A DNA stretch of 63,487 nt, the filler included, from Bigelowiella natans CCMP2755 (lineage: Eukaryota > Protista > Cercozoa): the NCBI GenBank assembly GCA_000320545.1. It is 6 parts of 6 records of this genome, joined end to end, with 100 filler letters (N's around TTAATTAATTAA, not from the genome) between each part and the next. Parts side by side here need not be neighbours in the genome. Positions count along the whole stretch, not along the records: positions 1 to 17,128 come from ADNK01000509.1; 5 more parts are not named here. The stretch is one strand, 5' to 3'. Shown here piece after piece: positions 20-17,128 of this stretch (within the stretch, counting starts at the first letter, position 1; every line of letters begins with the position of its first letter). The translations under genes were made by a program, and so were the position numbers. The notes below the pieces were generated by a model. The model saw only the letters and a list, made by a program, of their open reading frames with translations. It did no database searches and was not told where the DNA came from.

Positions 20-3017
20 GAACACCATGCGCTCCCACAGCAGCGACTGACTTTCATGGACCTGTCAATGGGAGGAGGAGGGGAGGAGGAGGGGAGGAGG
101 AGGAGGAGGGCGATGATGATGATGATGATAAACAACAACGATGACGATGACGACGGCGAAAACGACGATCTCCATCACATACTCATGTGTGCACGCTTGC
201 TTTCTTATGATGTGTTAATGCTGCTTGGTGGTTCTCCCATCAAAATTTCATACCCCCATGGACAGCGCACGTGATACGGGAAGATCCTATCATCAGAGGC
301 GAGTGTATTAGGATATTATAAACAAAGTAAGAGAATGAGCTGGTGCGGAAACACTGAGGAGGAGGAGGAGGAGGAGGAGGAGAAGGAGGAGGAGACGTAG
401 TTAACTATTCTCATTGTAGTAGCACCTGCTGCAGCTGTGAGCGTCCTTGCTCATAGAGAGCATGCCCTACTTCGTGGATCTGCAACATGATGGTTGTTCT
501 TAAACATCGTAATGATTATAATAACAATTATAATGATAATAATCATAATAGTGATGATCTCTTGACGATGCGATGATAACTATCATGACTCTATTACTAC
601 TACTACTACTACTCCTACTACTACTGCTATACACAACTATTTATTTTACTGTGCCGCCGATTCCCTCCATCCAGTTCTTCTCGTTGTATCTCGTCGTAAT
701 ACGAACATCGCTGGGTCCCACCTACGGTAGTGGTAGCAGTGATAGTATTAGTAGTAGTAGTTGTTGTTGTTGTTGTTGCTGTTGTTGTGGCCAAAATAGT
801 AATGATAAGTTTCATCAAAGGTCAACAAAGGTTGCACTTGCTTGCAAGACCAACTGCTGATTCGAAGTGTCATCATCATCACTCACCCCTCCAGTGAATG
901 GATGCACAGATACGTCGAAACGGCCTCTTTCTGTATCAAATCCTGTAGGTAGGTAGGTAGGTAGGTAGGTAGGTTGGTAAGCATGCAGGAGGAGAGGATG
1001 CAGAAGGAAAGAAGAGAATCGTTGGAATAAGAAGAAGACGTCACTGACTGCGACTACCCAAATCCTTAGCGATCTCCAAACACAGCTCTGCTTGTGTGTC
1101 AACAGGCCATGCAGCGTCTGTGAGAGCTGCTGGCAGCTTCATATCGCCTGCATCGATCACTGACTTTACCAGGGGAACAAGATCCTAGTTGTACGGGTAG
1201 GGAAGAAGAGGAGGAGGAGGAGGAGGGGAGGAGATAAGAGCAGCCGTGGAAGAGGGGAGTATGGCTGTTTAAAAGATGAATCGAATCGCTACCACTACTA
1301 CCTTCTTGAGCTCTCCGAAGATGTCATCAAGTCGTGTGGAAGGCATTCCTCTCTCAAATGCGTCTAGAGCGCCTGCATCAATCAATATCCATAAAATAAT
1401 GTGTGAAACCATTACTCTCCAACAACGCTACCAATTATCTTCCCTGAGGGTGTTAATCCGCCTTCATCAACCTCCCACTACCCCTCCTCCCCCATTCTCT
1501 CTCCCCCTTCTCTCTCTGACCATCATAAATCGGAAGATGAGGCCTCGTCAACTTCGCAACCTAAGTGGGAGAAAACTCTACAATATTAGCTGCTCATTAG
1601 TTTTTTTATCGATTGGATATTTTCTTGCGACAAATTGCAGTACTACTAGAGAGTAACTGCTAGGAAGGAAACAAGTGTACCTCTTTCTTAAGCTGAAACA
1701 TCTCTTTCAACTTTGGCTCGAAGCCGTTGAAATCGTCGTCCTGCGAGGGATATGATTCAGTTATTCACTGGGCTCTTGCATTTGATTCGATATTTGAATG
1801 ATGATCTTCACAACTCTCTCAATAGCACGTCTCATGTTGCTTTGAATTATGTGGTAGTAACATACACACATCTGTCGAATAGGATTATGACACCTTTCTT
1901 GCCTGGACCCACGCGTTAAACGATTCCGCCTCAAGTTCAGCTTCTCTCTGTTGTCAACATAACCATCAACATCATCTCATTCTCGTCATCATTGCCTTAT
2001 CTTTACAATCGTCATCGATGTCATTCTTCAATAAGAACATATGAGTCAGAGTATCGTCGAGAGGACGAGCGAAGTTTTGGCAATCAAAGAGATCTCCACG
2101 TGTTAGCAGTACCCTGGCAATTTCCTTCGACTTAGCAGTCTCGAGCTTGTAATCTCTCTGCGCATCACGGCAGTTTGCACGTGCAAAATCGCATTCCAAT
2201 TCCTCACCACCCTTAATGTCCTACCGAAAGGCCAAAGAGGTTAATAGCATCAATAGTTTCCGACGTTCTTGACTGTTGAATCCGGGTATTATTTACGGCT
2301 CACACCGATGTTTTCTGTGTTTGCAAAATTGGTGTTGAGATACAATCCACTCGTGTATTATCTCCACCGATGATTCTCAAAATATCTCTATTTTATTTAA
2401 ATGAATATCCCATACACAAGCCTAGCTTTCAGCTTCGTCTTCGTAGTTGCAACAAAATATACGCAGGAAACTCGTAAATATCAAAATGATGTATTTTACA
2501 ACCTCCAGGAGTTGACCGAGGGCAGGGTCAGTTTGTTCTCGTGGATTACTGCTGCAAGGACCGACTTTGCTGTCCCCTAGTTCTGCTGCGCCGGAAGGCA
2601 TCATCGTCTGCTCATCCCACCTAGAGGACATGATTCAACCGTCAAAGCAGCCATAGCGGCAAAGAGGGGCGGCTGAAGCAATGAATCAACAACATCACGA
2701 ACCATAAAATTAAGTGTACAAAACTATATATTTGATACTTCACCCTAGGATGGAGGAGACTCCAGAGAGTTGGTTGATTTCCTTGAGCCTTTCACAAAGT
2801 TTCCCGTACGTTGCCACAGCGGTCGGCGTACCTGCGATGGCGGCTGTCGAGACTGTGGCGCGAGCTTTCGCAAGCGGGGATCGAAGCAAACTTGCAGGGG
2901 ATCTTGATGAAGATCGAAAGAAAAGCATCATTACTGCAGATAAGGCTAGGAAAGTGACAGCGGCTAATGTGCGGAACGATGATGCGGCGCGTCTACGTCC
3001 CAAAGGTCCCTAACCAT
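20..3017 (-). CDS. Metallocarboxypeptidase, family M32 (carboxypeptidase Taq-like); about 13 exons visible, 3' part runs off the window start; N-terminal signal plus transit-like leader
   Basis: Manually spliced GT-AG exons give YGKLCERLKEINQLSGVSSILG-WDEQTMMP, ANCRDAQRDY, AWVQARK-DDDF, ALDAFERGMPSTRLDDIFGELKK, GFDTERGRFDVSVHPFTGG, DVRITTRY, IHEVGHALYEQG (HEXXH at 462-476) and VHESQSLLWER (47-58), all typical M32 motifs. Apparent single-base losses near the 5' end (see findings). Confidence 0.92.
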
Positions 3018-3715
3018 ACACATGAATTTTTATGGTCGAATCGGAGATGTGCCCCTCGCACACACAAAAAAAATGATACATTTCGTTGCCTAAATGATCG
3101 CACACATCAACCCCTCCTACCCCACCCCTCCCTTTGCCCCATCTCTCCTCTGTCCCCAAAAGACACGTCGTCCACCATTCTCTGGTTGTGGAGTATTCGC
3201 TGCTGTTGTTATGAAGTTGTTGGCAACAATATAATCTGATAATTCAGATATATTCCGCATGAAATCTTATCCATTATGATGGAGCTCTGTATTTTTTACA
3301 TTGAGACACACGCTAGATCAAGTCGCATGACGAAAGACGGAGACAACAATCACATTTCGAAATAGCGCCATGATTTCGGGGTTGTCGCAGGGATAAAATC
3401 CAGACCATCTCTCGATCGTTCAATCGATAACGAGTTCGGTTATCATTTAGGCTATCCTCCCCCAAAAGGGAGTACGAGTAGCAGTGGTAGTAGCAGTGGT
3501 AGTCCAAGGTACTAGCGTGCTGCATTCTGAATCACGAGCGAAGAAGAGGGGTCTGTTGCACTGGGCTCTATTGAATTAACGTGTGTTTGCTGCTATTACC
3601 TAACCCACACTTATGTTCGCTTGTATTCGTACATGGGTTCTGACTGACAACGGGGATAGAAAATACTCCCTCCCCCCTCTACACACACACACACACACAC
3701 ACAAACACACAAATA

Positions 3716-4706
3716 GGTTACTTACAAAGGGTTTCTATCAACGATATGAAGAGAATCAAGACTCTCACAGGAGATGAGAAGCATAGGTCAAGAACAGTTC
3801 TGGATCGTGCGAACAATCAGACAAGACGGTAGTAGATTGGGGAGGAATTTATCCCCAACACATCCACCGATACATAGTACTTTCTCACTTATACCTTCCC
3901 CTCATTCCCCCTCCCCCCCCCCCTCTTCTCTTTCTCGGGATGTGTATGTGATGTATGATTTGAATCTGTTGTCGTTTTCTCAGGGGCGTAGTTGGAGATT
4001 GGGTACGTTCTTTCACTCTCACAATAAGTTATGAATGCACTCCTTGTAAACATCGTACATGTTTGTATGATAAAAATGAAAATTTGACCAAATATAAAAT
4101 TATACAGGTTTTCAGTTTATTTTCTGGATGTTTTTGTAATGTTGTGGTTCATACCGTTGTAGATGAAATCGAAAACCGGGTATAATAGAAATCTTACTCG
4201 ATTACCAACTTCCATAAAAGCAAGTATTGATCGTGGCAACTGGATCACTAAGGTGGATAAACTGCATTCATAATCACGAAATATATTTACGCACACAAAC
4301 ACACACAGAGAGAGACCACGCCATACAGTATTTTTTGCACTCTTTTCACAGTACCTCTGTTGCTGCTTCCGGAGATCAGACAGTACCATCAGCGAGATAC
4401 AGGTCTTTCTACTGACCTTTTAAAGAAAATTATCTGAATAACTTGAGTATATTTGTAATATTTGATTATATGCAGTTTATTGTATGATCTAGTATTTTGT
4501 GAGCGTGTAAATAATTCTCTCAGGAGGCGCTGAGAGGGCTGAATCTGAGTCTCTACGAGCTAGAATACCTCAACATGTCAACATCTTTTACTGAAGTAAT
4601 CTCTTACTTAATGCTAATAAAGACGTTAAATATCTCGTCCGCTTTTAAAGAGTAGAGAAAGAATACTCACAAATATACATACTAAAACCATCTAGTAGAT
4701 AATGGT

Positions 4707-4746
<40 letters not shown>

Positions 4747-5062
4747 AGCACCCCATCTTCTGTCCGAATCTTCCGTCCCACATCGTTGCAATCGTCATCA
4801 CAATATTATCAACCTTTTCACCATCATCATTTTCGTTTATTAGCCGGAAATCGTGCTGCTCGCAAGGCAGTACCATCACCTGGACTTGAACAGGGACGGC
4901 GTTGTAAGCTCCGATGAGCTGGTTGCTGCAACGAATATCCTAGCCATCAAATTTCCCAAATAAGATTCACACATACGTGCACGCACATACACGCACGCAC
5001 GCACACACACTAATAACATCGGAGACGAGCTTGAGAAAGGCAAACCATCACATATGTGTTTG

Positions 5063-5100
<38 letters not shown>

Positions 5101-5323
5101 TGTTTGTGAACGTGCATGCGTTGTTCGTGTTGCTTAGATCCAACTGCCCGAATTCCGGAGAAACCCCATGAAACATAGATTGAAGGTAAAAAGTAGTTTG
5201 ACAGTAGAGAAGATTCATCTTTGCTAAATGTATACATGTGTATGCGCGCGCGTGTGTGTGTGTGTGTACATAAATGTTTGTGGTTGAAATTTGTTTTCTA
5301 TGTTGCATTCATGTGTACGGTTG

Positions 5324-5366
<43 letters not shown>

Positions 5367-6860
5367 ATATGCTATGTGGTTGCACACATACATGCTCTTG
5401 GTTAGGAATATTTCCAGAATGAAAACGGATCGGAGACATTTTCGATACGACAGTTCATCAAAACGCTGTCTGTTTTCAGTCCGAGATCCCCCATTGTGGA
5501 AAAAGTTAGGTAGATTTATTTTTGATATAATGTGCACAAATGCAATGACGCACACAAATTTTAGATATACTCTTCTTCACACATAGGATACTGAATATAT
5601 CGTGTGAGGTAAGAGAGAATATCTGTATTGATCAGGTTTCTGTTCAACGTGTACGATTGTGACGGAGACGGAATGATCAGCAGAGAGGATCTGAGGAAGA
5701 TTTTAACCATGGTCATGACGATTCATTTGTGACACAAGAGGAATAACAAGAAAGTCCAAAGATGGCCACACTTACTTCGAAGGAAAAAAAAAAAATAAGG
5801 CGACTTAATTGTGTGTATATTAGACTCTTTCGAATAAGATGGAAGCTGAAGACATCGAGAGAGTGGTACGTGAAAAGTGCAAGTTGTTCCTTCAAATCTT
5901 TTCCGAGGAAATTCTCGTGTTTTTTACCGATAAAGTGACGAACACTTAAACGCTAAACACACCACTGCTCTATAGTTTCACCACATGTCTACCCATCTCG
6001 GGCACTCTTAGGTCGAGGAGACTTTCAAGGAATGTGCGAGAAGCGAAGCGAATTCATTTGTAATTCAAAAATGTGAATAATTTCTGTATGTTGTATGATC
6101 TTGGTACACATTTTGTCGAGGATCTATCTCGATTCTATCTCTCATCCCATTCCGCCCCTTTGCTAATCGCTAATCAAACTCCCTTCGGATTGACGAGAAA
6201 TGTCTCATGAGATGATCAAGAACGCTACTGTAGGTACCTACAAAGCACCAAAAGGTTCAAGATTTCATCACATACAAGAATTTCCGTGAAGTATTGGCGA
6301 ACACCGATGTTGGTTCTAAGGTAATCATATTCGTTTATTGTCTGGCCATCCCTCGACTCAAAAACAACGCTGTCACCTCAGGATGTGTTGCTCAAACGTC
6401 CATGCACACGTTTATTCTCTTGTTGGTTTTTACTGCGCTGCTACTGATGTGATTGCCTCGATTGACTTTGTTGTTGGATGATGAACATCATTCCTCAATA
6501 TTGCAGGTAAGCATCGATTTAGAGAGATTAGCAAGATCAAAACAGCTAGTCAAAATTGGGAGATCGACGACGAGTTTCCCAAACATCTCGGATAAAAAGC
6601 TAGAGATGAAGAAAATGAAGAAGGCGGAGAAGAGGGAGAAGGAAAGTAAACAGGTGGAGGATTTAAATAATAGCAAGCCGTCCACACCAGATGAGAAAGA
6701 TAGACAAGGGGAAAAGGAACCTAATTCCAGTAAGAGAGATAGGCATCGAATGAAAAAACAGAAGACTCGCAGATCTAAAAAGAAAAGCTTAGAGAAAAGG
6801 GGAAAGGGAGAGACGAAGCTATCCCGAATAGCGAGGAACTCATCAAGATCTAAATTCTAG
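3716..6860 (+). CDS. Calcineurin B / CHP-like EF-hand protein with N-terminal extension (CCC motif) and probable basic C-terminal tail; multi-exon, start not resolved
   Basis: Spliced exons: YLCCCFRRSDSTISEIQ-EALRGLNLSLYELEYLNMSTSFTE-PEIVLLARQYHHLDLNRDGVVSSDEL-IQLPEFRRNPMKHRLK-EYFQ..IRQFIKTLSVFSPRSPIVEKVR-FLFNVYDCDGDGMISREDLRKILTMV..FITYKNFREVLANTDVGSK, following the CNB/CHP pattern. Last exon (about 6507-6860) is inferred. Confidence 0.78.
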
Positions 6861-7735: not shown

Positions 7736-8286
7736 TTAAAAAGCAGAGCCTCTTGTTTTCATGGGGACGGACTTTGACATTGTTAATCCAGGAGGCTCAG
7801 GACTACTCCTCTTCATTACTTGAGGCAAATTGAAAGAATCCAGTTCTTTTTCCTTATTCGTAAGCTCGTCAATTATCTTCTTGCGTAGCTTTGGAGTTGA
7901 AATCGTATCCAACTTATCTCGCAGCTCTTCAGTCCTCCTTTCAAGATCAACAAGCTGTCCAAATGCTCCGTCAGCAACAGTTATATTCCTGAAAAATTCT
8001 TTATAGCTGATGATGCCTTTTTGATCGGCTAAGCTTCCCACTATAGACCCCATTTCTTTCGTTGTTAATGCAATATCTGGGTACACCTTGGCGAACGACA
8101 TAAGTCCCAGGTGAAATTCTTCAGTTGAAAGCTTTCCATCACCATCGTAGTCGAAATATCTAAATAGAGATTCTATATTCCTCACCCCGCTCCTATCTGC
8201 AGCCTCCAACAGATTTCCTAACAATTGATTCAGATGTTTATCCCCTTCTTCCCCTGCTTTGTTATCATTGCCCTCTTCGTTGTCTT

Positions 8287-8325
<39 letters not shown>

Positions 8326-10384
8326 CGCCCTGCTGCTGCTGTTTGGTCTTCTTTTTCTCATCTAATTCCGAGATTTCTTCCCTGAGATGTCTATACAATG
8401 GTGTGAAACGCGACAAGAATTCCACATAGTCCAAAGGTCCTCTGAAGCTCCCATTCACTCCATACGCAGGAACACCTAGCATTTCTTGGAAAGATAGCCA
8501 CGGGATACTAACACCAATTATCTTATTCAAGCCTGCTTTCCATTGTGTGCGGGTTACGTAGCCTTTTCCTAACCCTCCTCCATTCTTTGATGAAGACACT
8601 TTGTCGAAATGATGAATCAACTTCAATCGGCACTTGGAAATGTGTTTAATCATCAGAGTAAGCACCTTGTTTTCCTTGGCACCATATCTCAAGCAAAAAT
8701 TATGGGAATTCTTGGCATGTCTTTTCTTAGCCTCGTATTGAATAAATCGGTATTGTAGCTTCTTCGTCTCTCCAAATTCAGCACCACCCTGATAATCATA
8801 GTATGATGATGTCGTCTTCTTTGTATCCTGGTCAGGTAGCAATTTCTTCTTCTTTTCCTTCTCGCTGCTGCCTTTGGTCGAGATTAACATCACAGAACCG
8901 AGATTATCATCATCTCCTGTGTATCGTGAAGCAGAGAATACCGTTACCATCTTATTGTCGAAATTCCACTCATAGCCAGCGTGTACACACTCATGGGACC
9001 GAACGACCAAAGACAACTTGTTTTTGGCCATAAATGTGTCAACCACATCTTCTCCAAATACGCACCCTGCATTTCGTTCTGAATTATGGCGCCTCCCTCG
9101 AAATGGTCTCCCTGTGTCCCAATCTGACTTAGGGTCTGACCACAGAAGGTCCTCCATGATTGTTTCGTAGGGGGTGGAGAGATGGTGTCGGTCTACATCC
9201 AGGATGTCTTTTATGGTGATATCGTGCCAACTGAGACCTCCATACACCACAAAAATCTCGTCTTGTACCACTGATGCAAGAGGTAAATGCTGAAAAGCAT
9301 CCGAAAATTTATTCCACATATCTCGATTATATTTCCGGATACATTCATCGAAGAATCCAAAGTCCGCGTTCATGTCAGTAGCTTCATGATTACCACGATT
9401 CAAGAATACAGATTCTGGATATAAGATCTTCAAAGCGAATAATATCAACACAACCTCGCACGAGTTCTGGCCTCTATCTACAAAATCCCCATTGAAGATA
9501 TACTTGTTGCGGCTGAAAGGCAGTCCATGCAAGGTAAAAATGTGGATAAGATCGTCCAATTGACCATGCAGGTCACCGACAATCACACATCGAGCTCCTT
9601 TTGGAAGTGCAACATCCTTCACATTTGTCTCACTGATAAGAACATCTTCTGCTTCTTTAATCAACCTCAATGCTGTTTTTTCGTCCAAGATTTCCCCAGC
9701 CTTAAATCTGTCCATCATTGCAGTGACAAAATCCAAATTGATCTGCTCTGAGCTGCGTAGATTTTTACCTGGGGTCGAATCAGCATTCACAAGTGGAGGA
9801 GCAGAAATCGAAAGGTGGCGATGATGCTCGTTATCTCCCTCCTCCCCTTGCTGGATATCATCATCATCATCATCATCATTTTGATGTGCTGCTGCTGCTG
9901 CTTTTTCACTGATGTCGTCGTCGTCGTCGTCTTCGTTGGCTTTCCTTCCTCTGTTTTTCTGTTCTCCCCCCCCCTTCGCTGCCTTCGTTGCCTTCGCTAC
10001 TGATGCTGCAATTTGTCTCTTCTCCTTTTCTGTCCATTTTTTGGCCAAATCCACTGCGTTGAAATCAGAGTGTCCTCCGGAGAGTGGCGGAGGAGATTCC
10101 GGTAAAACCTCCTGCTGCCGAAATCTTGATTTGCTATCACCACTCTTCTCGTTGGTGCGTAGGAGATCACGACGGATAGCCTCGATCTTCTTCTTAAAAT
10201 CCTTTCTGGCTTCTACAAGTTTCTTCCGCGAAAACACTACCTCTCTCTCTTCCAAGAGGTCAAATTGTCTTGCAGCATGGCGAAGTCTCATTCGTTTGAA
10301 TTTTGATCTTGCCATCGCACCTCTGAAGAGGCTCTGAATCTTAACAGCAGCAATCCCATGAAACTTTTTCTTATTGCCACTCAC
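7736..10384 (-). CDS. PPEF: PPEF/RdgC-type Ser/Thr phosphatase (IQ motif + PPP domain + EF-hands), one 882-codon open frame; start uncertain (GTG)
   Basis: IQ motif IQSLFRGAMAR; PPP motifs GDLHGQ, GDFVDRG, RGNHE, LLWSDP, RSHE, TVFSASRY; C-terminal EF-hand DYDGDGKLSTEEF. The HGG motif reads YGG. Confidence 0.92.
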
Positions 10385-12506: not shown

Positions 12507-12989
12507 GGTACTTCTCGATCACACTTCATTCTTCAAATTGAAAATTTTCAAAGCTTCAACAATCATGTGTCGTAAGAGAGGGATGTTCTTTCATGCCATT
12601 GGTGTACAAGTAAATCATGTCATCACCTACTCGCCATTTGAGATGCCGCAAAATGTTTTCGAGCGCCACGTTTCTGTAGGTGCACATGCACGCATGCTCT
12701 CCATTTCATTAGCGGAGTAACAGTCAGTCACAAAAAGGCACCACACTGACAAAATTTCATGCGACATGCACGTGAGGACGATAGCATGCGATTGCTGCCT
12801 GAACATCTTTCTAGCTGTGCTCCAATCCGTCTAGCCGTCTGCACACAGAAACGGTCACACATGGTGCAGCAGCCAAGCTCACAGCATGCATGCATGAATC
12901 ATCGCTGACGAGCGCGTCGACTGGAAATGGAACGTGCGTGGAAGATCAACGAAGCCCACATCATAGAATCGAGGGAACAAAGGCCGTGC

Positions 12990-13441
12990 ATTTGAAAAAT
13001 CTTGGTTTCATGCCTGGCTCTCGCACAACAGGAATCACATTGAAGCTGCCAAGCATCGCCACATCATGGATGCGCGCCATCTGTGGTGTTGGCAACCTTG
13101 GAACTTTTTTGCTGTCCAGAGGACAACGAACAAAATTGGAAGCAATGTGTGACACATGCAACACATTGCAAGACATGGACCACATTCTGCAATGCAGAAA
13201 GCACGGACCACAGAGACTCAGACTCAACAAACAATTGACGGCCATCATGGATCGCAACGATGAGACTGCGCGTCTCACAACCGCAGAAAAAACCACTCGC
13301 AAAGCTGCGCGCAAAGCGCGACATGCTAGACCAAATCATGATGCATTTTCATGCATGCAACATGCAACCAAGGAAACAAACAGACACAACATTAGCGCTG
13401 TAGCCGCTGCATTGCACAGCTGCATTGTGCAATCAGGATGA
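12990..13441 (+). mobile_element. 5'-truncated non-LTR retrotransposon (LINE ORF2 C-terminal zinc-binding region)
   Basis: ORF 12890-13441 contains MRAICGVGNLGTFLLSRG..CDTCNTLQDMDHILQCRKHGPQRLRL, matching the C-x2-C..H..C..R motif at the end of LINE ORF2. No RT domain present. Confidence 0.6.
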
Positions 13442-13902
13442 CCATTGAAAAAATTTAAACATTTCATTGCATCCGTCTCACATCACAGAATCGCAACCAT
13501 CGATCACGACGCAAAGTTGCGAGATGTCATCGTGTCGATGGCTTGTGGCGCGCACGCTTAGTTTTAGCTAGCCGTTGCGACATCACTCAAATGCACATGC
13601 TTGTTGCTGGCGCACATTTGTCTCAGAATGTGCATTGCACATTCCAGGCGCGCACACTGCGTTTCAAAATCATTCATCACAATTCACACAGACACACAAC
13701 AGTCCATTGGCGCGCAATTGCAACCGCTGCAGCGCTGGGCTGCGCATCACAGGCGCGTGCACATTCTGGACATTGCTTGCCAAGCTGCAATGAGCGCAGC
13801 TGAAACAACGTGCCATTGCATGCACCGCATGCACGCACTGCTAGACTGTTCACTGCCGGCATGGACACACACCACATCGGAGGCTGTCCACAAGCCAGCA
13901 AG

Positions 13903-14296
13903 TGTTGCATGATTTGCCCGCTCTAGCGCTTGACTGTGGTGTCCAGACGTTGGTGCAACGCACGGCACCATGTAGCGCGTACCACTACGCGGGCACAAGT
14001 CACGTGCGACAACAAAGGGGTTGTCGCGGATATAGAATATAGATAACGTAGATATTAATACAGCATAGGCACGTGGGTTCCGGCGGGACTCATGGCAGCA
14101 CACCGGAAGTGTGCTGCCCCACGTGCGGCGGCATTCGCGAAAGCTTCGCGAATGATTACGCAGTGCACGATTTAATAAAAATATAATCTTTAATAAAAAT
14201 AAACACAACTCTTCAAAAGGAAGCAAACGTGCCTTTCCCCCCCCCTGCCTACTTGTGCACGTAGCGCCTCGGCCTGTGAACACCTTACGCGCAACA
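13903..14296 (+). mobile_element. LTR (394 bp), oriented on + by TATA, poly(A) and PBS order
   Basis: Termini TGTTGC (13903) and GCAACA (14296) are inverted repeats. TATA-like tract about 14030-14060, AATAAA at 14174, 14192 and 14198, then 5 nt (acctt) and a TGG-starting PBS at 14302. No second LTR is visible because of the gap. Confidence 0.75.
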
Positions 14297-17128
14297 ACCT
14301 TTGGCTTCCACGCGGGGAATCGAACCCCGATCTTGGGAGTGAAAATCCCATATCCTCCCCTTCCTCTCGGTAACCTTTGCAACGCCACCCCAGAAGGGGT
14401 CTTGTTTATTTCTCGATCTCAGATTTACCTTGGCCCTAACATACTGTCCTTCCTTTAGAACTCGGCCATCGTACGGGACCTTCTCGTCTTCGCTCTCGGT
14501 ATCGTCGTCGTTGTCGTCGCCTTCTTCCCTCTCCTTATCCTTGATACCTCCCCCAGACGTGAAGGTGTCGTTTACTAACCCTTGTATCTTGTCTGGTGTG
14601 GTGCTATTTATCCTGCTTAGGTTGGCCAAGGTGCGGTGGAGTCGCTCTACCTTGGAGTTGGACTGGGCATAGTATACAGGTGAGGCATCAATATTAGGGT
14701 GTGGTAGCTGTAGAAGAGAGGTCTCATTATCCACATGTAACTTCTTTGGTATCTTGTTTATGCTAACTTCATCAGGGATAGCCTGGAGCTCAGACTCCCA
14801 GGTACGGTAGCAGTTAGTAAGCCTCTGCTTATATAAGCCTTTGTTCTTCTTAGCAACGTTGACCTTGATAATCTTTTTAACCCAGCACTTTCCAGTGGCC
14901 ACATCAACGAAGGTAAGGTAGTGATAGCCATCGTACTTATAAACATCAATTTGCACGATATCTAAGAAGTTCCTTGCTTTGATTTTCTTAGATGCACGGC
15001 TCTTGCTGGACTCCTTGGTGGCGACGCCTGCCGCCTTCAAGCTGGAGCACCTGCAGCCACGCAGGTATGTCCTTATCTCTTTTAGCTTGTAGGGCCAGTA
15101 GTAATGGTAGAGTAGAGCAGTGATATGGTTTTCTCCTACGTGTGCAGGTCCATGGGCGGTAAAGAGAAGGGCTCCCCTGGTCCGCCGTGGCACGTAGGTA
15201 CGCCTAACATTATTAGTGTATACATATATCCTATCACTAAGTACCTCATGCTTGTGTTTGTATTTATCCAGGTGTTCTTGAAGGTGCTGGAGCTCCTCTG
15301 GCTCAGGCAGGAAGTCGCCGTCCTCGAAGGTAATCGCGTTAACCATAGGGGTGACCTGGGTAGGGACTTTCTTTTCGAACAGCCTGCTGAAATAGTCAGC
15401 AAGCTGCTTGTCTCCTGGTGCGTAGACCACTGTCCTCTTGTCCCTAAACTCTTCCGTGTCCGCCCTCATAGCTGCATACTCATCGTTAGGCGCTTCGAGC
15501 TTGCGGTCGATGCCTAGGAGGGGCTTGTGGTCAGTCATTAAGGTGAAGCTGGGCACCGACAGCAGGTAGTATCTTAGTTTCCTCTGCGCCTCAGTCATGG
15601 CTTTATACTCTCCTTTTGTAGGGCTGTACTTGGCCTCAGCTGCTGTGCAGGCCCTGCCCCACACCCGTATGATCTGCTGGTCTTGGGTAAGTACAGCAGC
15701 CATACCTAGCTTAGACCAGTCTGTCCATAGGGTAGCTGGTCTAGTAGTGTCTAGCTTAGCATTCAATAGGGTGTTGCTGCATAACTTTATTAGGTTATCG
15801 AAGTGGGCATCAAGGCCAGCCTTGGCCCACACCTTAGCGAAGCTGAGGCCTACAGAGTTCTCCTTCCGGTAAGCAGTAGTAAAAGCAGCTGCAGTCCTAG
15901 CGTAGGTAGGGGAGAACCTACGTAGTATCCAAGCTGCAGTCTGCAAGAATGACTTTAACTCCTTTGCATTCTTAGGTTTAGGGGCTTGCTGTAGTGCTGC
16001 TACTTTCTCGGGGTTTGGGGTGATGCGGCCTTGCTCCAGGTAATATCCACACCACTTGATTCTTGTAGCTAGGAATGTACACTTCTGCAGTCTAATAGTA
16101 AAACCGAAGTGTGCAAACCTAATAAATATATTTTCCAGGAGGAAGATCTGAGCGACGACTGTGTTGGTACATATTATGTCATCATCCACATACACAAACA
16201 CAAACACCCACAACACAGACGCCATCCCATCATGTGTGTATGCCCTGTAGTTCTGACTACTGAACGCATCCCCTGATATGCTTAGGCCGTAAGGGAATAC
16301 GACGAAGTGCCACTTCCTGTGCCTGCTGGAGAACGCGGTAATGGGGCGGGAGGTTTTGTGGATGGGTGTCTGCATGTATGATTCATTTTTATCTAGGGAA
16401 GAGTAGTATTTGTATCCTATGACGTGTTCAATAACGTCATCTATCCTTGGTGTAGGTGTCTGGATCCTCTTTATTACTCGGTTGTGGCGGATGAAGTTGT
16501 GCGCCAGGCGGAAGAAAGGGTAAGTAGGTTTCTTAGCTAGCACATGTCTCACGTTCCATGGTGAGTTGCTTGGCTCTATCTTCCCTTCCTTTGCCCATTC
16601 ATTGATCTGCCACTCTATCTTTTCCCAGTCCGCTTCCGGTCGCCTATGTTCTGGGTCATTGATGATGCACTCTTCGTATCCCTTCTTTAGCTCGATCTTT
16701 ACTGGGGTAAGCTTGCTGGAGGGCTTCGTCGTCGGCTTGGTGATGTCAGAGTACTTCTCGTTTAATATTTTATTAATGTACTTTTTGCCTTTGTCGATAT
16801 CCCAATCATCAGCTGGGGGGGTCTTGTCCAGTAGCTCCGTTATCTGTCGGATGGTCTTGCCGGGGTTCTTCTTCCGTAGCTCGGTAGGTGTAGGTAGCTT
16901 GTTGTCCGCTAGGTCCATAAACTCTAACGCATTAACGCTTGACTCAGAGGTCCACTCGTCAAGCCGTATCATGTTCTGGCTGATGGTCCTGCCTGACTTC
17001 TTTGGCAACTTAGCAAAGTATATCTTGTGATTGTAGAATGATATGATCCCCCCTAATTTTTCTAGGGCATCCTGTCCGAGGAGTAGTTCCATGGATAAAG
17101 TCATGGCTACTCGGGTCTTGATTTGGGT
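14285..17128 (-). mobile_element. Ty3/Gypsy (Metaviridae) pol: protease end, RT, RNase H, integrase; uninterrupted frame running into the gap
   Basis: LLGQDAL (protease end); LDKNESYMQ, PYGLS, YVDD at 16181-16192 (RT); TDWSKLGMAAVLTQ and TDHKPL (RNase H); H-H-C-C then D (VQIDVY), D (HVDNE), E (KVERLH) (integrase). RT-RH-IN order indicates Gypsy. Confidence 0.95.
14302..14356 (-). tRNA. tRNA-Glu(TTC) 3' fragment (about nt 21-76) with encoded CCA; extended primer-binding site, not a functional tRNA gene
   Basis: Minus strand reads AGGATA TGGGA-TTTTCAC-TCCCA AGAT CGGGG-TTCGATT-CCCCG CGTGGAA G CCA: perfect anticodon and T stems, TTC anticodon, 4-nt variable loop. The 5' acceptor strand (TTCCACG) is absent. 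Confidence 0.88.

Follow-up and report, generated by a model that had tools for sequence, protein, structure and literature searches.

A primer-tRNA copy joined to inverted pol in a Ty3/gypsy element of Bigelowiella natans: the probable record of a reverse-transcription accident

In the genome of Bigelowiella natans, an LTR and a copy of tRNA-Glu lie directly beside a pol reading frame on the opposite strand, which raises the question of whether this locus represents a new kind of retroelement or an ordinary one that replicated wrongly. This part of the window (the whole stretch of DNA that was analysed, 63,487 nucleotides with filler included) had been read both ways in the original prediction: as an integrated aberrant product of reverse transcription, or as a family with an architecture of its own. 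Our conclusion is that the locus is the fossil of a replication accident in an ordinary active element and not a new retroelement design. Specifically, we give a probability of about 0.8 to the reading that plus-strand strong-stop DNA read through into the primer tRNA, underwent serial template switches and was then integrated.

The locus and its family

The core of the original prediction, in which an LTR, ACCTT and a tRNA-Glu copy stand next to opposite-strand pol, holds, but its LTR bounds, PBS length and integrase C-terminus do not. The features are as follows, with coordinates counted along the window.

13484-13970, no strand: unique host DNA left of the insertion; beyond 13483 the only match in the genome is to itself
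13967-13970, no strand: left TSD copy, ACCA, found again after the right LTR in C3227
13971-14296, plus: left (5') LTR, 326 bp, TGTAGCGCG..CGCGCAACA, from sequence comparison
14031-14046, plus: TATA-like tract, from sequence
14051-14055, plus: GATAT, LTR positions 81-85, where the antisense copy in C3227 ends
14174-14179 and 14192-14197, plus: two AATAAA signals, from sequence
Near 14218, plus: poly(A) site, R/U5 boundary, with 13,527 RNA reads A-tailed after 14218
14297-14301, plus: ACCTT spacer between LTR and PBS, found in every copy
14302-14356, plus: PBS and read-through copy, complement of mature tRNA-Glu(UUC) nt 76 to 21, from tRNA comparison
14353-14356, no strand: TCCT, 4-nt microhomology at junction J1, common to the tRNA copy (AGGA, nt 21-24) and pol
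14357-17128, minus: antisense gag-pol fragment with RT, RNase H and most of integrase, reference positions 4865 down to 2094
14285-17104, minus: chimeric 939-aa ORF, in which pol is cut after ..ERKGR and 26 junction residues follow

The LTR had been placed at 13903-14296; its first 68 positions as then drawn, 13903-13970, are unique host DNA. In Logan contigs from three DNA runs, 13458-13995 is covered at single-copy depth and the host/LTR junction is confirmed. The left LTR is identical to the right LTR of the insertion (100% over 326 nt) and to the LTRs of normal copies, and its predicted plus-strand sense agrees with both AATAAA signals and with the polyadenylated RNA reads. Judged from the sequence and from junction mapping, GATAT at 14051-14055 is probably the U3/R boundary, that is, the 5' end of the genomic RNA.

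The family itself is a 5.7-kb Ty3/gypsy element present in hundreds of near-identical copies: there are 694 candidate matches genome-wide, copies are 98-100% identical, and 978 nt of pol are 100% identical across the 40 scored copies. The normal order, all on a single strand, is LTR, 10-nt PBS, 1657-aa gag-pol ORF, PPT and LTR, with 4-bp TSDs (AACA, CCCA, TGAT, GTGC, TGCA and ACCA are recorded); the 326-bp LTRs are direct repeats with TG..CA ends and no mismatches within a pair, and the PPT, GGGGGAGG, abuts the 3' LTR. The PBS, TGGCTTCCAC, pairs with nt 67-76 of tRNA-Glu(UUC), including G73 and the CCA, and beyond it normal copies carry a degenerate tRNA-like stretch; the 18-nt canonical PBS that had been read at 14302-14319 is therefore too long, the normal one having only 10 nt. 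In the polyprotein, Pfam finds gag-asp_proteas (513-599, weak), RVT_1 (798-939), RT_RNaseH (1036-1118) and Integrase_H2C2 (1222-1269, weak), giving the domain order protease, RT, RNase H, integrase. The integrase core, rve, has no Pfam match there, and D, D and E motifs were recognised by eye after Integrase_H2C2. Likewise, the polyprotein gives no match at E<=0.01 to the chromodomain (PF00385), the criterion for a chromovirus, and the closest relatives also lack one. The nearest relatives are environmental contigs with just 38-45% identity over RT, RNase H and integrase, and an exact-protein look-up of the 1657-aa polyprotein returned no match. The family resembles other Ty3/gypsy elements (Metaviridae) in its TG..CA LTRs, tRNA-complementary PBS, PPT, single gag-pol ORF and 4-bp TSDs, but differs from them in an exact PBS of only 10 nt and an rve domain undetected by Pfam. 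It is young, high-copy and transcribed, and it is primed by a tRNA-Glu(UUC) isodecoder with G73. As a separate observation, this family breaks the genome assembly and contaminates gene models.

Against this background the opposite-strand ORF can be interpreted. As predicted, it runs through the tRNA copy into the LTR (939 aa), but the proposal that the tRNA copy supplies the integrase C-terminus fails: pol in intact copies goes on ..ERKGRKQYYIYDG.. for another 157 aa past the junction, and the last 26 residues of the 939-aa ORF are a reading of tRNA copy, spacer and LTR. This end is a junction artefact and not the native C-terminus. Exact-protein look-ups of the 939-aa ORF and of a junction-spanning 213-aa ORF returned no match, nor did metagenome scans with the host flank and with the junction sequence. 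The antisense fragment at 14357-17128 is 99.96-100% identical to normal copies and has Pfam matches to RVT_1, RT_RNaseH and Integrase_H2C2; it is cut by the contig end.

These comparisons bear directly on the idea of a new design, in which a tRNA-like structure would precede the 3' LTR of pol-sense RNA, or pol would be natively antisense. The window locus does have the sense 3' part of a tRNA between pol and an inverted LTR, as such a design would have it. Every other copy examined, however, has the ordinary layout; in more than 40 scored copies the LTR, PBS and gag-pol share a strand and an ordinary PPT precedes the 3' LTR, none of the 40 scored pol copies crosses the junction, and a search that covered these copies and 305 candidates found the antisense junction at the window locus only, where the new design had called for an architecture recurring across copies. 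In element coordinates the junction lies ~520 bp upstream of the 3' LTR and therefore not at the PPT position, and intact pol extends well past it. The comparisons refute this reading, and we give it almost no weight.

The tRNA copy and its four integrated occurrences

The plus strand at 14302-14356 is exactly complementary to tRNA-Glu(UUC) from A21 through the 3' end and the CCA, in agreement with the original description of a copy of nt ~21-76. The 55-nt length given there needs one qualification: the last 4 nt of the copy, TCCT, are common to pol, so that at this locus it is 51-55 nt long. Rfam reports a minus-strand tRNA at 14305-14372 (24.7 bits, E 0.019, below gathering); as the copy is without the 5' third, ARAGORN makes no tRNA call in the window. 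Host tRNA-Glu(UUC) genes identical to the copy were found, and none encodes the CCA (the C2833 gene reads ..GGAAG and then acc); the copy therefore stems from mature tRNA. Among these genes, G73, which the PBS needs, is present only in that of C2833.

The 45 nt beyond the 10-nt PBS occur in just four copies genome-wide. Because the tRNA copy is identical at these four loci and a control pattern gave 0 matches, it is not a product of chance. Two other origins were rejected, namely targeting of a tRNA gene and a tRNA-derived SINE: the copy has the CCA, is without nt 1-20 and always lies exactly at the PBS.

It is informative to compare the four. The tRNA copy ends at A21 in two of the other loci and at G22 or A21 in the third, and what follows differs in every case: it is joined to antisense 4869 at the window locus, to position 346 in C197, to position 353 in C2143 and to LTR position 15-17 in C2666, which yields LTR-tRNA-LTR. 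Both C2143 and C2666 are full-length: the 1657-aa ORF is intact, the two LTRs of each element are identical, and the TSDs are TGAT and GTGC; therefore the element's own route integrates read-through products.

The composite insertion and its junctions

The window contains the left part of one ~11.2 kb composite insertion with ACCA on either side, the remainder lying in the adjoining contig C3227. In the coordinates of the intact reference copy at C1193, its parts are, from left to right:

Part 1: ACCA left TSD, LTR, ACCTT spacer, complement of tRNA nt 76 to 21
Part 2: antisense 4869 to 81 (pol, gag, leader, normal PBS, U5-R of the LTR)
Part 3: antisense 4939 to 4924 (16-nt templated insert)
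Part 4: sense 4749 to 5392 (pol end, PPT, first 2 nt of U3)
Part 5: sense 353 to 5716 (leader, 1656-aa gag-pol ORF, PPT, LTR), then ACCA right TSD

Inverted LTRs had been predicted for an aberrant reverse-transcription product, and such an LTR is present in C3227, in antisense from position 326 down to 81. Colinearity holds between the antisense segments of the two contigs (2094, gap, 1005), and the right flank in C3227 is unique. The C3228-C3227 link spans an unassembled gap of ~1.09 kb and rests on contig order, TSD match and colinearity. Contigs were ordered by the rule that the start of each contig n lies next to the end of contig n+1, and the rule held, by TSDs, for two other split elements, C537 to C536 (TGCA) and C2924 to C2923 (ACCA); C3229 contains no element sequence. 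In pattern searches for the right end, ACCA after an inverted U3 tip had no match, and ACCA after a U5 tip had five, C3227 among them. One of these, C2923, was rejected as the right end, as its U5 tip and ACCA are accounted for by C2924, the partner contig of that split element. When the empty site was reconstructed, no ORF of evident meaning was seen to cross it. Between the antisense and the sense segments the only difference is one 3-nt indel, which is too little to show two parental RNAs.

Could the 14356/14357 junction, or the C3228-C3227 link, be absent from the genome and have arisen in assembly or cloning? The family is 100% identical over dozens of copies and contigs break inside the element; the read continuations listed at 14356/14357 are canonical and tRNA-gene ones only, with no bridging contig displayed; and C3227, when aligned to the reference copy, shows many small gaps near its start, a hint of low quality. 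Yet a false join by the assembler is impossible from a 4-nt overlap. One sequenced molecule or more must contain the junction sequence, which begins precisely at the tRNA endpoint of three other loci. Furthermore, the host/LTR junction confirmed in the three runs is only 386 bp away, and TSD, orientation and colinearity agree between both contigs. An artefact is thus very unlikely.

The internal junctions are themselves instructive. Each has microhomology of 1-5 nt (4, 5 [ATATC], 2 [TA] and 1 [G]), and five of the eight junction ends fall at landmarks of reverse transcription: tRNA A21, an internal purine run, LTR 81-85 after the TATA-like tract, the PPT/U3 boundary (PPT+2), and position 353, a site shared with the independent C2143 copy. 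The purine run is that of J1, where TCCT corresponds in pol to reference positions 4866-4869 within an 18-nt all-purine run. The other three ends (4939, 4924 and 4749) are off landmarks, all in pol within ~200 nt of J1.

This anatomy speaks to autointegration, in which integrase would have put a cDNA end into the element's own body and left an inverted internal segment beside an LTR. Inversion circles that place an LTR directly beside inverted sequence of the element are documented for LTR elements (PMC7197481, citing Garfinkel 2006). However, autointegration joins the terminal CA of the LTR to its target, whereas here the LTR runs on through spacer, PBS and 45 extra tRNA nt, so that the joint lies 60 nt past the LTR end and not at its tip; no internal 4-bp duplication marks the joints, and the product is chromosomal with a TSD. 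Autointegration is accordingly an extremely improbable source.

Post-integration rearrangement deserves more consideration, although we regard it as improbable. A tRNA-extended element like C2143 would have inserted at ACCA, and host replication or repair, through microhomology-mediated break-induced replication or end joining, would later have given rise to the inverted duplication together with the small templated inserts. Replication-based events, too, typically leave microhomologies as short as these of 1-5 nt and templated inserts like the one of 16 nt, three breakpoints cluster at reference positions 4749-4939, and the sense segment restarts at 353 exactly like C2143. On the other hand, this route needs one breakpoint precisely at the end of the tRNA copy, a second where the PPT meets U3 and a third directly after the TATA-like tract, and the other three tRNA-extended loci show the same 3' end to be the reactive species. 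In addition, the segments are ~100% identical to the family and both LTRs are identical.

A reverse-transcription accident and what it may mean

The reading we prefer, a reverse-transcription accident, agrees in substance with the first of the two possibilities originally raised, read-through followed by mispriming on a pol-sense template. The order and templates of the switches are a proposal worked back from the end product. Plus-strand strong-stop DNA would have passed the T-arm and copied the primer tRNA to A21, halting just short of the two uridines in the D-loop. The unpaired ..TCCT at the 3' end of this DNA would then have annealed to AGGA in the polypurine run of a pol-sense template, most likely a co-packaged genomic RNA, and been extended up to the 5' end of that RNA at LTR position 81-85; J1 could equally have arisen if two 3' ends paired and each primed synthesis on the other. 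Three further switches, via ATATC, TA and G, would have followed. The third segment would have been copied on minus-strand DNA to the PPT/U3 boundary, that strand's own 5' end, and the last switch, onto minus-strand DNA at 353 just past the PBS-like region, would have allowed synthesis to run to the normal U5 end. The resulting double-stranded DNA, with proper U3 and U5 tips, would have been inserted by integrase with a 4-bp duplication. The composite does have proper U3 and U5 tips, and a single TSD, ACCA, surrounds the whole.

It is worth considering these events beside known systems. When reverse transcriptase does not stop at m1A58 or m5Um54, plus-strand synthesis enters the tRNA and its product mismatches the minus strand (PMC8599865). 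HIV-1 in TRMT6-mutant cells is alike in that DNA synthesis passes the PBS-complementary part and leaves an unmatched 3' tail, but that work expects non-integrable products, whereas in B. natans four are integrated, two of them as intact full-length elements; moreover, read-through here reaches A21 in the D-loop and arose naturally in an alga (PMC8599865). Abnormal template switching is known to yield large complex insertions of LTR elements (Sabot and Schulman 2007, PMC1950507), and there too a large composite daughter, fused from parental sequences, is inserted as one unit. The B. natans composite differs in its inverted near-full-length segment, its 55-nt primer-tRNA copy at the first switch and its landmark ends at five of eight positions; to our knowledge, these three features have not been reported together. 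Helenus TRIMs likewise have tRNA-derived sequence within an LTR element, but theirs is a heritable, gene-derived Pol III promoter in the LTR, whereas the B. natans sequence is an antisense copy of the 3' part of a mature tRNA with CCA, at the PBS and in four copies only (PMC10886601).

Two further readings are unlikely, and we offer them tentatively. In the composite, antisense 81-4869 and sense 353-5716 face each other as an inverted repeat of ~4.5 kb, with an intact and strongly used LTR promoter upstream. Transcription of this repeat could yield a long hairpin RNA that would serve as a natural trigger for silencing the very active family to which the element belongs, in the way that Mu killer acts in maize. 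Also, the primer tRNA-Glu(UUC) may be without an effective T-arm stop, in which case read-through to the D-loop is recurrent. If so, the 55-nt PBS variants in C2143, C2666 and C197 would be heritable and replication-competent, and LTR elements would have a natural route to lengthen or renew the PBS and to capture tRNA sequence.

A false lead is thereby removed, as there is no new retroelement architecture at the window locus; what takes its place is a rare natural record of reverse transcription failing and then being rescued. In this unstudied family, the composite's breakpoints point to candidate positions of the PPT/U3 border, of an internal purine tract and of the 5' end of the RNA. Under the preferred reading, plus-strand strong-stop DNA in vivo can copy the primer tRNA up to A21, read-through products can be completed by microhomology jumps and integrated, sometimes as intact elements, and a single accident can build an 11-kb inverted composite.

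The normal element and its expression

Matches to 13903-14460 elsewhere in the B. natans genome (at least 40 scored, from 694 candidates, at 98-100% identity) start only at ~13966-13971, and the LTR is thus shorter than originally predicted, when its start was placed at 13903. The surrounding features are as follows.

Features of the window
7736-10384, minus strand: 882-aa single-exon ORF with IQ, PPP5-like, calcineurin-like phosphoesterase and EF-hand domains; from these it looks like a host gene for a PPEF/RdgC-type Ser/Thr phosphatase
12860-13483, plus strand: 3′ terminus of a non-LTR retrotransposon from an older family; 53 genomic matches at 70-100% identity (most 84-93%), among 1188 candidates
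12890-13441: 183-aa ORF of the non-LTR element, with a C-terminal Cys/His motif
13484-13970: unique host DNA
13971-14296, plus strand: LTR, 326 bp, TGTAGCGCG..CGCGCAACA
14132-14155: perfect 10-bp palindrome CATTCGCGAA..TTCGCGAATG within R of the LTR; Rfam lists it below threshold, for both strands, as a miRNA-like hairpin, possibly a structural element there

The ruler for the reference positions below is an intact natural copy (C1193, locus L032, element 171-5886), the layout of which is LTR, ACCTT, TGGCTTCCAC, a degenerate tRNA-like stretch, a single ORF of 1657 aa, and GGGGGAGG abutting the 3′ LTR, with CCCA as target-site duplication (TSD). Normal copies match the tRNA over the 10 nt of TGGCTTCCAC only, and not over a canonical 18-nt PBS as had been supposed. 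They also keep, 3′ of this exact PBS, a degenerate match to tRNA nt 66-55 (L032 502-524, reference positions 332-354), suggesting an ancestral PBS of ~22 nt that would have reached the position before T54, where complementarity to the primer tRNA also stops in HIV-type genomes (PMC8599865).

Pfam matches follow the Ty3/gypsy order of protease (weak), RT, RNase H and integrase zinc domain. No Pfam match to the integrase core (rve) was found in the polyprotein (L032:536-5506) or in its six closest relatives; the D, D and E motifs of the core are visible by eye in this polyprotein, and the core seems to be divergent across the element's clade. The nearest foreign relatives share 38-45% identity in protein comparison. 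Along 978 nt of pol, at least 40 copies match the window without a single difference (100% identity). Several jgi/Bigna1 gene models include pieces of the element at 100% identity.

Sense transcription is very heavy, and the LTR must be plus-sense, since 13,527 RNA reads have poly(A) added after 14218. An ordinary high-copy family with this LTR sense disposes of the idea of a new design, with a tRNA-like structure at the PPT position or a natively antisense pol; normal copies simply run LTR, PBS, ORF, GGGGGAGG, LTR. In one RNA-seq run (X21), 27 reads connect 14269 back to 13971, a joint between LTRs without the last 27 nt of U5, and several reads contain opposite-strand joints inside U3 (within 13971-14344). 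Minus-direction depth in this run is up to 1815 in 14180-14344 versus 18 further right.

The tRNA copy and its four loci

After CGCGCAACA at 14296 come ACCTT and then, at 14302-14356, a 55-nt reverse complement of the 3′ part of a tRNA ending in CCA. Rfam places a minus-strand tRNA at 14305-14372 with a score below gathering (24.7 bits, E 0.019) because the 5′ third is absent, and ARAGORN called no tRNA in the window. A host tRNA-Glu(UUC) match, sought as the original prediction proposed, was found by pattern search of the B. natans genome in four genes (one on contig C2833, two on C2427, one on C2811). None of the four encodes CCA, and the C2833 gene alone has the discriminator G of the copy. 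The D-loop of the tRNA gene is AACGGTTA, and the copy therefore spans A21 to CCA, ending just short of two uridines. Its template was the mature tRNA, copied by reverse transcription. A D-loop modification such as dihydrouridine is a candidate block to synthesis at U20/U20a and would fit the end of the copy.

A 54-55-nt tRNA copy follows the LTR at only four loci in the genome. When their junctions are compared, again as proposed, the endpoint is the same in all four and the downstream sequence differs.

Sequence joined to the tRNA copy at each locus
C197: leader, reference position 346
C2143: leader, position 353
C2666: second LTR from its position 15-17, in the order LTR, tRNA copy, LTR, normal PBS
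Window: antisense pol

The C2143 and C2666 elements are full-length, with identical LTR pairs, intact 1657-aa ORFs and TSDs (TGAT and GTGC, respectively). The second LTR in the tandem 5′ end of the latter (locus L035, C2666:23900-33800, element 180-6265) lacks its first 14-16 nt; this tandem has the look of strong-stop synthesis that started again on the minus strand. All four loci share a free 3′ end at tRNA A21, in other words plus-strand strong-stop DNA extended past its usual stop. According to Fukuda et al., synthesis enters the tRNA without the m1A58 and m5Um54 stops, and the product, which mismatches the other strand, was expected not to integrate (PMC8599865); in B. natans, by contrast, read-through products did integrate.

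The composite insertion

As judged from sequence, the window copy belongs to a larger composite, of which it makes up one end. Its antisense part corresponds to reference positions 4869 down to 2094 (99.96-100% identity), overlaps the tRNA copy by its last 4 nt (TCCT/AGGA), and runs to the contig end (C3228) at 17128. In normal copies 157 aa of intact pol lie beyond this joint, so that the integrase C-terminus previously read in frame across the tRNA copy arose by accident. A genome search for an LTR tip with ACCA next to it matched C3227, the numerical neighbour of the window contig. In two other split elements the higher-numbered contig runs, at its end, into the start of the contig numbered one lower (C537 into C536 with TGCA at both flanks; C2924 into C2923 with ACCA at both), which places the C3228 end beside the C3227 start. 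The two agree in orientation, colinearity (2094, gap ~1.09 kb, 1005), identical LTRs and ACCA at both ends.

Composite in C3227, in order (reference positions)
Antisense 1005 down to 81: gag, leader, normal PBS, antisense LTR 326 to 81
Antisense 4939-4924
Sense 4749-5392: pol end, PPT, TG
Sense 353-5716: 1656-aa ORF, LTR
Right flank: ACCA, then unique host DNA

The start of C3227 (L060 1-924) has nine small gaps relative to the reference copy within 929 nt, which suggests that this contig-end sequence is of low quality and its fine details unreliable. The composite lies ~490 bp downstream of the non-LTR element. It contains an inverted repeat of ~4.5 kb (window 14357-17128 plus L060 1577-6937) downstream of an intact LTR promoter and could give rise to hairpin RNA; plus-direction (antisense-pol) RNA depth over it is ~1-4 versus 3-45 for sense.

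Junctions and their origin

Internal junctions of the composite, with microhomology
J1: tRNA A21 to position 4869, in an 18-nt all-purine run; AGGA, 4 nt; as assembled
J2: LTR position 81-85, a few nt past the TATA-like tract, to 4939; GATAT, 5 nt
J3: 4924 to 4749, with strand change; TA, 2 nt
J4: 5392 (PPT plus first 2 nt of U3) to 353, also the rejoining point in C2143; G, 1 nt

That J1 is a misassembly at 14356/14357 is improbable: a 4-nt overlap cannot produce one, and three runs bear out the host-LTR junction, 386 bp off, with single-copy depth. From the junctions we infer, with a probability of about 80%, read-through of plus-strand strong-stop DNA, serial template switches and then integration. 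The following route is the simplest for a single DNA strand as it grows. Strong-stop DNA would have read through the tRNA to A21 and misprimed on pol-sense genomic RNA, copying it up to the capped 5′ end; a start at U3 position 1 would be expected had a DNA plus strand been copied. After two short switches, synthesis would have continued on minus-strand DNA until the PPT/U3 border, where the strand's own 5′ end is annealed, and a last jump to the minus-strand 3′ region at position 353 would have permitted normal completion. Copying of the aberrant plus strand by the minus strand, as far as the U3 tip, would then have yielded linear DNA with correct ends that integrated with a 4-bp TSD. Large composite insertions that result from abnormal template switching are documented in Triticeae (PMC1950507).

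Rearrangement after integration would account equally well for the microhomology and the 16-nt templated insert, but its breakpoints must then coincide by chance with several replication landmarks, and we regard it as unlikely. Autointegration, which predicts a joint at the LTR tip where the composite has none, has hardly any probability. The original prediction of an integrated aberrant reverse-transcription product was right in essence, and the inverted LTR that it foresaw is the antisense one in C3227. The arrangement it described (plus-strand LTR, ACCTT, tRNA copy with CCA, antisense pol) also largely stands, save for the LTR start, the length of the family's normal PBS and the integrase C-terminus. 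For a defective copy of what is otherwise an ordinary and very active Ty3/gypsy element, the locus is unusually informative.
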